Assembly (NCBI GenBank): GCA_964247055.1 | Contig: OZ176050.1 | Location: 6,324,001-6,388,000, forward strand | Direction of reading: 5' to 3' | Length of the DNA: 64,000 nt | From: Paragordius varius | Taxonomy: Eukaryota; Animalia; Nematomorpha | In this document: in pieces, positions 694-3,600 of the stretch | How the letters are laid out: each line of letters begins with the position of its first letter | How positions within the stretch are numbered: position 1 is the stretch's first letter | Notes under the pieces: model-generated | Seen by the model: the letters and a program-made list of their open reading frames with translations, nothing else | What the model was told of the DNA's origin: nothing | Databases searched by the model: none | Translations under genes and position numbers: made by a program

Positions 694-3600
694 ATGCCGT
701 ATGAGCAAGACTTTTACCACGAGTGTGCTAATATTTTAAATAAGGCATCAACAGGCAAAGATAATGTTAAAAATTTAGTTTATAAAAGCATTATAAAGGT
801 AAAATATTTTTTTAATAAGCAGGATAAACGAAAATTGATGGCATTAGTATGTAATTATTTGAAAATTCATGATAAAATTGATGATATATATACGATGTAT
901 TTTAAAGGAATTCAGTTATCTCCTTTCCTAGTCAAAATTTTTATATATGAATACTATTTTGGCTTTAAAAAATCACATTTGCTTAAAAAAGAATTAATTA
1001 CCTACAAATTATTTAAGCCATTTTACATGATGCGCAAGAAAAGTACTCTATATTATATATTATTTAGTTATAAATTCCGAAGATTTTTTCGAAGAAAGTA
1101 CATATATATTTAATTTAAGAATTAAGCATGAAATATTTTAGAGTTAACACCCTTAAGGTAAACGAAAAAATGGCTATTATGGGATTAACTGATGATTCAT
1201 TTGTGTTAAGCCCATTAACCGATAAGTTAAACTTTAATTATATTACAAAGTATTGATTTTGATTCCAAGAAAATATATAAGGATCCTCATATCAAGCAAC
1301 TTTATTCAATATCTCCCTTCCTTGACATACATGAAAATCCTTTTGTGATAAACGGTTCCTTAATTATCCAAGATAAGGTATATAAATTTTTTAAATTTGT
1401 TTTACCATTATATATATATATATATATATAAATATATCGGTAAGGTAAATGACATTTTTTAAATCGAATATATTAAATTTAACTCTAAATAAATAACTAC
1501 GAATTTGCAATACAAATGGGTTATTTTAATTTTTTGCAGCAGGGAAGGAGTTGCTGCATATTTTAAACTTATAATTCCGTATATGCCCTAATATGTGGAA
1601 ATATTCAATATAAAACAGTAATTATAAAGCAATTTGACCCAATTAGTTTTTTTTCATTTGAGCAAATGTCTTTTTAATTGTCCAAAAACATTTTTTTTAG
1701 AATTAAAAATTGTCATATTTAATACATAGGAATTTATTGTATAAAAATTTATTATACAAATATATATTGTGTATATTATAATTTTTACGGTATATATATG
1801 CGTGGTAATTTAAATATAAGAAGAGGTATGCTATTAATGTGAGTATAAACAAAGAATTCATATATAGTCATCTATATATTTATAAAAATGGAAAATTGTG
1901 GCTTTGTGATTTTTTTCTGGAAAACCGGTACATCCATTAAAATCCAAATGTCGAAAAAATATACATTAATGGATGCCCCGACAATAGTTTCGTCCTTTTT
2001 TCTAATTAGGCTCGCAGTTTGGGCCCACTCCGTGTAAAAAACGGGTTGTTTTTGAAAACAGAGGTCCACAAAAAACGTGTCTTTGAGACAATTTTCCGGA
2101 AAACGTGTTGGACCATTGGATTTTAAATATGATTTTTTTACTTTTTTTTGATTGCGCCGAACATAGTCGGCTCGCCTTTTTATATGCCCTCTTTTTACCC
2201 GCTCCTCCGTAAAATGCCATTTTTATAAAACTAAGAACTAAGGCCACAAAAATAATTTTTTGAAACTATTTTTAGCCCGAGGCCGTAAAGATTTCATAAG
2301 GATTCCAGGTATTCCTAGTTAAAAGGCAAAAATTTTAGTTGGCCGTTTTTTTATATTGGCTGCTGGGTAAGGAACGCTAAAAACTGCCCCGTCATATCGT
2401 AGCGTGTCTTGGGACTAAATTTAGGAAAACCTATCAGGCCATATTAGTTCATAAGCTACTTAAAATATTACCCGTAACAAGGCAAAAATTTAGTTCCGGT
2501 TTAAAATTAGCCGTTAATTAGACCCTTCACGCCCTGAAAAATGCGTCACCATAGAATGATTTTTTAGTTTTAAGGCAATTTTTCCAAAAACTAATGAGAG
2601 CATCTGAAATCAATCATGATTCCATATATTATCCGTTAAAGGGCAAAAATTCAATCAATAGCTTTTTTTGTATCCTTGGTAGGAAGCTACCCGCCTAAAA
2701 CTGCGCCACCATATCGAAATTGCGTTGTTAAGGACTCAATTTTCAGAAACTTATCAGGCCATATAAGTTTAATAAGGGCGTGAAATATTACGCGTAAAAA
2801 GGCAAAGTACTCACATATATAGCACAGCTCTTATATTCAAATTACCACGCATCTATATATACCGCACAAATAAAAATATACACAATATATATTTCTTTGA
2901 TAAATTTCCATTCAATAAATTCCTATGCTATAAATTTACCCGTCTCACACCCTTTTTAATTGACATTATTATTTAAATTTTGTTTCATTGTATATATCTT
3001 AGTTTAGTTGTGTTCCAGCCATCGTTCTAAATGCAAAACCTGATTCTCATGTTATCGATACGTGTGCCGCTCCTGGAAACAAAACTAGTCAATTGGCGGC
3101 TCTGATGCAAAACAAAGGGTAGAAAACTATAATAAATAATATTTTACATTATCCTCAATTTATTATTGAAAATAAAATTTCCCCATATTTTATTAAAACT
3201 TATTTAAATTCTTGGCTAATTTATTTTTTGGTAAAATTTCATGGTTAGAAAAATATTTGCAGTGGAGCAAGATCCCAAGCGCATGAAACTTTTACGCAAA
3301 CGATTAGAACATTTTGGAGTGTCAAATACCACATTTTTAGAATCTGACTTCACCCTGATCGACCCAATGGAAGATCGTTTTTCCCGTGTAGAATATATTC
3401 TAGTGGATCCATCTTGTACAGGAAGCGGTTATATAATTTTTAATATATAGTAAATATCGTTTACTAAACATAGTTATTAACTGTGAAAAGTTATATAAAA
3501 TATATTTCTAATATTGCATTTCAAAAAAATAATTTTTTTATCTTTTTAGACTAAATATTGCATCCAAAAAAATAAGTTCTTAATCTTTTTTAGAGTTATA

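Follow-up and report, generated by a model that had tools for sequence, protein, structure and literature searches.

Probable spliceosomal introns of 22-25 nt in the NSUN5 gene of the hairworm Paragordius varius

Four segments of 22-25 nt in the NSUN5 gene of the hairworm Paragordius varius are very probably real U2-type spliceosomal introns of a working gene, and we infer from the DNA sequence that they are excised by splicing. It is close to certain that this gene needs introns shorter than 30 nt. Their positions and phases agree with those of introns in a related hairworm, and a contig from a second allele carries the same segments, which excludes an assembly error. After the myxobolids and dicyemids (PMC13644364), hairworms are probably the third animal lineage with introns below 30 nt and the first ecdysozoan one.

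The NSUN5 gene and its predicted structure

The gene lies on the forward strand at 694-4478 of the window, which is the whole 64,000-nt stretch of DNA that was analysed. It has eight GT-AG introns, and their removal leaves one open frame of 472 codons. Introns 1-4 are 24, 25, 22 and 25 nt long and introns 5-8 measure 130-1625 nt. A sequence-only reading of the same DNA had described four AT-only GT..AG segments, a stop at TAA 1111 when nothing is spliced, and an NSUN5-like protein once the segments are removed. The coordinates, ends and lengths of the segments stand, while their interiors are not purely A and T (8.8% G+C, compared to 27.0% in the five exons around them). Translation from the ATG at 694 without splicing does stop at 1111-1113, and the NSUN5-like protein is recovered as the 472-residue frame when the four long introns are removed as well. 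The predicted features are the following, in order along the gene.

694-798, plus strand: exon 1, with the ATG at 694 and 35 codons; aligns with Gordionus exon 1
799-822, plus strand: micro-intron 1, 24 nt, phase 0, GT-AG; 25 nt in the X1 allele; ancestral position
823-1042, plus strand: exon 2, NSUN5_N domain (weak Pfam match)
1043-1067, plus strand: micro-intron 2, 25 nt, phase 1 in codon 109; its acceptor is the least certain boundary
1068-1097, plus strand: exon 3, 30 nt (39 nt in Gordionus)
1098-1119, plus strand: micro-intron 3, 22 nt, phase 1; 30 nt in the X1 allele; ancestral position
1120-1225, plus strand: exon 4, start of the ferredoxin-like domain (profile positions 3-28)
1226-1250, plus strand: micro-intron 4, 25 nt, phase 2; X1 and X6 differ from it by three substitutions
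1251-1377, plus strand: exon 5, remainder of the ferredoxin-like domain (profile positions 42-78)
1378-3002, plus strand: intron 5, 1625 nt, phase 0; holds a 1.2-kb element at 1717-2935
3003-3118, plus strand: exon 6, SAM-binding motif I
3119-3248, plus strand: intron 6, 130 nt, phase 2
3249-3427, plus strand: exon 7, motif IV (DPSC)
3428-3679, plus strand: intron 7, 252 nt, phase 1
3680-3887, plus strand: exon 8, motif VI (YSTCS)
3888-4150, plus strand: intron 8, 263 nt, phase 2
4151-4478, plus strand: exon 9, ending at the TAA stop

Single-exon queries against Pfam return NSUN5_N, NSUN5_fdxn-like and Methyltr_RsmB-F in this order along the gene, both N-terminal matches being weak, and the top PDB match of exon 7 is the NSUN5 chain 2b9e_A. 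The 472-residue model contains both catalytic-cysteine motifs (motifs IV and VI). With its domains in order, these two cysteines and best hits that are named accordingly, the protein has the characters of an NSUN5 / Rcm1 28S rRNA m5C methyltransferase. Its closest relative among 150 representative proteins is the NSUN5 of the horsehair worm Gordionus sp. RMFG-2023, with 47-49% identity. A tree of 48 sequences, which describes one gene, contains no named nematode or arthropod and carries a warning on the atypical composition of Gordionus, unites the two proteins at 100/100 on a long common branch, and the hairworm grouping is further marked by a private intron (intron 2) that both genes have in common. 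The protein databases contained neither a transcript-derived Paragordius NSUN5 nor a second hairworm NSUN5. Near the C-terminus, exon 9 encodes an Asn/Thr-rich insertion (4300-4430), and a Lys-rich insertion occupies the matching place in Gordionus. The bulk of intron 5 (1717-2935) is a 1.2-kb element with terminal inverted repeats of ~130 nt (84%) and four diverged internal repeats that are spaced ~158 nt apart.

Splice models, intron positions and a second allele

This DNA abounds in short GT..AG pairs, with 31 of 15-39 nt in 690-1400, and a blind micro-intron scan that relied on composition and open frames returned many false candidates and overlooked known ones. The motifs alone therefore prove little, and the case for the micro-introns rests on homology. 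For 694-1377, all stop-free models that contain no more than four GT-AG introns, each 15-200 nt long, were enumerated. The model with four micro-introns is the first of 10,912 when scored against Gordionus NSUN5 (score 398), and the best model restricted to introns of at least 30 nt takes rank 58 (score 364). The larger pair of introns that the sequence-only reading had set against its own proposal (77 nt, 1043-1119, and 112 nt, 1158-1269) fails at rank 1192, with a score of 296. Against a profile of 18 distant NSUN5 homologues the four-micro-intron model ranks fourth with 78.6 bits, the top model reaching 80.1 bits and the best one without any intron below 30 nt 59.5 bits.

The exon structures of eight orthologous NSUN5 genes were rebuilt by exact translation, and these include Gordionus, Priapulus, Patella, Capitella, Owenia, Paramacrobiotus, the soft coral Dendronephthya and the medaka Oryzias melastigma. 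In Gordionus (GCA_954871325.2, locus L001) introns 1-4 measure 41, 46, 40 and 43 nt and have phases 0, 1, 1 and 2, which match Paragordius in all four cases. The phases of the first seven introns are identical in the two hairworms, and in both genes the first four introns are short and the last four long. The genes differ in their short class, which is 40-46 nt in Gordionus and 22-25 nt in Paragordius, and in the eighth intron, which sits elsewhere in Gordionus. Each of introns 1-4 is 17-21 nt shorter than its Gordionus counterpart, a comparison with one related species that is unrooted within hairworms with respect to shrinkage in Paragordius versus growth in Gordionus.

Comparison with the remaining animals suggests that most of these introns are old. 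Intron 1 (phase 0) precedes a (D/N)K(R/K)xL motif; its alignment column is shared by introns of Gordionus, Priapulus, Patella, Capitella and Paramacrobiotus, an intron of Owenia falls at the same motif, and the lengths outside hairworms are 193-6868 nt. Intron 3 (phase 1) has counterparts in Gordionus, Priapulus, Capitella and Owenia, in each case seven residues ahead of the conserved YxRxN arginine, and an intron is found within two residues of this position in Patella, Paramacrobiotus and Dendronephthya. On this alignment introns 1 and 3 occupy positions that are ancestral for animals. Intron 4 (phase 2) lies at +28 from the YxRxN arginine versus +30 to +38 in five animals including Gordionus; it shares their phase and a loop of variable length in which exact placement is impossible, and its position is probably ancestral too. 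Intron 2 interrupts codon 109 in phase 1 in the two hairworms, and none of the seven other genes has it. The first 308 codons of Oryzias melastigma NSUN5 (L006) are free of introns, and the comparison indicates that the ancestral 5' introns have been lost there. The sequence-only reading had suggested that introns 1 and 4 are shrunken ancestral ones and had proposed a comparison with orthologues. The comparison supports an ancestral origin for introns 1 and 3 and probably for intron 4; intron 2 is shared with Gordionus only.

Variants around introns 2 and 3 lie only 1-3 points behind on protein score, so the protein score does not fix these boundaries. The micro-introns might thus be real and have other limits here, namely a 40-nt intron at 1043-1082, a 16-nt one at 1067-1082, a 53-nt one at 1067-1119 or a 29-nt one at 1098-1126. 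Such boundary variants score 386-397 versus 398 against Gordionus, the 16-nt variant is slightly ahead on the distant profile, and the region is poorly conserved, with no change in 1043-1097 of the second allele (X1, see below) that could decide. However, Gordionus has one phase-1 intron in codon 109 and another seven residues ahead of the YxRxN arginine, which are exactly the sites given by 1043 and 1119, whereas the phase of the 29-nt variant is wrong and the codon-109 site is lost in the 53-nt variant. In addition, exon 3 reads INSED opposite INMEA of Gordionus, and 1066-1067 is the first AG past the 1043 donor. Because their positions and phases match the orthologues, 1043-1067 and 1098-1119 are favoured over the near-scoring variants, which are improbable, and all of which still require the 24-nt intron 1 and the 25-nt intron 4.

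No sequencing run recorded as RNA covered 640-1400. Contigs of runs X1, X5 and X6 aligned to 1-1400 gave unspliced or exon-only pieces without joints, and run X7, presumably RNA, matched nothing there. The X1 contig (1249 nt, depth 96) covers 350-1381 at ~98% identity, with 19 substitutions and 9 inserted letters, and is for this reason not the source of the assembly; it diverges from the window at 1381, just past the start of intron 5. It is unspliced DNA that carries all four segments with every GT and AG end intact. Since the DNA of another allele has the same segments and ends, the four segments are not assembly errors, and the indels that the sequence-only reading had allowed for as a counter-explanation drop out. 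X1 has just two indels, both within micro-introns, where an extra T brings intron 1 to 25 nt (+1 nt) and an 8-nt duplication brings intron 3 to 30 nt (+8 nt). Substitutions affect 6 of 96 intron bases versus 10 of 588 exon bases (Fisher p = 0.016, or 0.0015 when indels are counted), and 14% of the bases contain both indels and 6 of the 16 substitutions, statistics that describe one contig and one allele. Six of the nine changed codons are synonymous, which leaves I>T, V>I and I>L. The X6 contig covers intron 4 and has the same three changes as X1.

Intron 1 is the sole micro-intron whose retention could have stayed in frame, and it has a second AG three bases before the acceptor that offers a 21-nt alternative. 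In the X1 allele this upstream AG is gone and a retained intron 1 leads to a stop at codon 54; the in-frame read-through is therefore settled, as the extra nucleotide of X1 shifts the frame upon retention. Retention of intron 2, 3 or 4 leads to a stop at codon 133-164.

It is very unlikely that the segments are removed by somatic DNA excision, IRE1-type cutting or ribosomal bypass. Short internal eliminated sequences of Paramecium and the 26-nt Xbp1 intron share the 22-25 nt size range, and the segments offer little room for U1 and U2 together. All of them, however, are GT...AG sequences at inherited spliceosomal intron positions, the contigs over 1-1400 (X1, X5, X6) contain no joined form, every intron-crossing contig being unspliced DNA, and the allelic length changes of +1 and +8 nt are incompatible with bypass over a fixed distance. 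Furthermore, introns that are equally short are spliced by the U2-type machine in ciliates (PMC12862383) and, by inference, in myxobolids (PMC13644364). Least probable of all are assembly indels or a decaying pseudogene with frameshifts that GT and AG flank by chance: three segments are 3n+1 long, like a one-base insertion, DNA of 27% G+C is rich in short GT..AG pairs and the spliced protein is ~10 residues shorter than its homologues in the intron-4 loop, but independent contigs have the same segments (all four in X1, intron 4 in X6), exon changes between alleles are mostly synonymous or conservative, the sites and phases coincide with real introns of other animals, and NSUN5 is otherwise intact up to its stop codon.

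Splice signals and further micro-introns in the window

The four NSUN5 micro-introns start with GT and end with AG, as U2-type introns do, and these ends are unchanged in the X1 allele. Their donors are GTAAAA, GTACTC, GTACAT and GTTAAA, which do not fit the RTATCCTT donor that is expected, along with a TCCTTAAC branch site, in a U12-type (minor) intron. Altogether seven introns below 30 nt were found in the window, in four gene copies, and all seven are the leading introns of their genes; the cases outside NSUN5 have weaker support. The other three are listed here.

346-371, minus strand: fifth micro-intron, leading intron (26 nt, phase 1) of the head-to-head gene; its removal joins open frames of 97 and 114 codons
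54147-54171, plus strand: first intron of beta-glucuronidase copy 1, 25 nt; the flanking exons correspond to Glyco_hydro_2_N 1-80 and 82-122
60364-60388, plus strand: first intron of beta-glucuronidase copy 2, 25 nt; two substitutions relative to copy 1, with the same ends

The seven donors are GTA or GTT without an extended consensus, and internal AG dinucleotides are absent from six of them. The last 12 bases contain 6-8 pyrimidines in the micro-introns and 7-8 in the long introns. No branch motif has a constant position; a YWRAY-like A is found 7-14 nt from the 3' end in four of the seven, and the YWRAY-like motif of NSUN5 intron 1 is missing in the X1 allele. An Rfam search of the 64-kb window revealed no snRNA.

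The gene that lies head-to-head with NSUN5 (1-663, minus strand) starts at 663, 30 nt from the NSUN5 start codon, which leaves almost no room for a promoter. Pfam, Atlas and a homologue search found no homologue of it and gave no support to AKAP17A as its name, and the 3 kb upstream of Gordionus NSUN5 contain no called gene. Between the beta-glucuronidase copies, 2 of 25 intron bases are different, compared to 2 of ~440 exon bases. They belong to a tandem duplication of ~6.2 kb (52308-58513 and 58514-64000, 97-98% identical) that includes the 5' part of the gene; copy 1 is apparently cut off at 58514 and copy 2 extends beyond the window. Glutaredoxin-3 (GRX3; 48493-51624, plus strand) has one intron of ~2 kb late in its coding region and no micro-intron, and a divergent Eph receptor with long Asn-rich insertions (24150-40244, plus strand) has visible introns that are all above ~70 nt by eye. 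The Eph receptor confirms that the DNA is from an animal, whereas GRX3, tried as a marker of the taxon, retrieved mostly paralogues from plants.

Repeats make up further parts of the window. A foldback element has 490-nt inverted arms (6407-6897 and 7335-7828, 95%) and arrays of a 21-nt unit. A dispersed repeat of ~570 nt occurs at 41036-41603, 47513-48083, 51822-52407 and 58519-58599 in both orientations with 80-85% identity, and one of its copies marks the start of the beta-glucuronidase duplication. A palindromic region of ~1.1 kb (45882-46960) is 72% self-complementary.

How such introns might be recognised can be outlined from these features. The spliceosome would pair the splice sites across the intron (intron definition) and would recognise a reduced donor, GTA or GTT. 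The branch adenosine would be loosely defined within the A/U-rich interior, without a distinct pyrimidine tract, and acceptor choice would usually fall on the first AG downstream. Decay of faulty messages could cover splicing errors, which is possible because a retained intron 2, 3 or 4 introduces an early stop. Long introns (130-1625 nt) would be spliced within the same transcript. As to their history, introns 1, 3 and probably 4 may be old animal introns and intron 2 may have arisen in hairworms, and all four would already have belonged to a minimal size class, 40-46 nt in Gordionus, before becoming shorter in Paragordius. As each of them is 17-21 nt shorter, a lower floor for the short class appears to be the better description than four separate deletions, and the simplest account would therefore be a hairworm minimal intron class whose floor is lower in Paragordius.

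Known short-intron systems and implications

The sequence-only reading had listed ciliates, nucleomorphs, microsporidia and dicyemids as groups with introns of this size, a list that lacks the myxobolid myxozoans. Among the 51 animal genomes of a survey from 2026, myxobolids and dicyemids alone had introns below 30 nt, with the reduced GTa...AG signals and conserved positions that are also seen in Paragordius NSUN5, and more cases were predicted among parasites (PMC13644364). The same source gives a median of 27 nt for Henneguya salminicola and 22 nt for Thelohanellus kitauei and Myxobolus rasmusseni. As described there, myxobolid introns resemble those of Paragordius NSUN5 in size range, GT-AG ends, a donor close to GTa and the lack of a clear pyrimidine tract, and the two groups also share conserved ancestral positions, short introns that adjoin short ones, a parasitic lineage and low G+C (PMC13644364). 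Unlike the myxobolids, Paragordius is an ecdysozoan worm and has a full bilaterian gene set close by (such as the Eph receptor), and half of the introns in its NSUN5 are 130-1625 nt long, one of them with a mobile element. Furthermore, the myxozoan introns have long-read RNA support (PMC13644364), whereas the Paragordius micro-introns are known from DNA.

Introns of Dicyema sp. have a median of 27 nt and two thirds are below 30 nt (PMC6543705), and short introns of D. japonicum are attributed there to Ogino et al. 2010. Like Paragordius, dicyemids are parasitic bilaterians with spliceosomal introns below 30 nt and a conserved exon-intron structure, but they are spiralians with a highly reduced body, while Paragordius belongs to the Nematomorpha, whose sequenced genomes are 200-300 Mb in size and rich in transposons (bioRxiv 10.1101/2024.06.11.598342). 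In ciliates, Paramecium bursaria introns have a median of 24 nt and a range of 15-100 nt (PMC12862383), and Stentor introns of 15-16 nt are cited in PMC13644364. The similarity to Paragordius NSUN5 extends to length, A/U-rich interior, GT-AG ends, U2-type splicing and a bias of introns towards the 5' end; however, introns of P. bursaria reach 100 nt at most, whereas Paragordius NSUN5 combines introns of 22 nt and 1.6 kb in one transcript. Searches of the openly accessible literature found no report of short introns in hairworms, and the word "intron" is absent from the Gordionus and comparative hairworm preprints.

To the likely position of hairworms beside myxobolids and dicyemids, the NSUN5 locus adds two things: all four introns can be compared with those of a related hairworm, and the allele data rule out an error in the assembly. 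Gene finders that use an intron floor of 30-40 nt will break such genes, and Gordionus NSUN5 is already affected: the RefSeq protein XP_065318767.1 (315 aa; L001 3001-3810) starts in exon 2, reads through the 46-nt intron and lacks the N-terminal domains, which are kept in the 491-aa model CAK9299079.1. As gene finders miss such introns, the gene losses reported for hairworms may need a second look.

It is possible, though on balance doubtful, that a specific alteration of the splicing machinery in one hairworm lineage has lowered the minimum excisable size by ~18 nt after its divergence from Gordionus, with kilobase introns still being spliced in the same transcripts. If this is true, the two hairworms would form a close pair for finding what determines the minimum length of animal introns. 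A relative with orthologous introns of 40-46 nt offers a direct handle on what sets this minimum.
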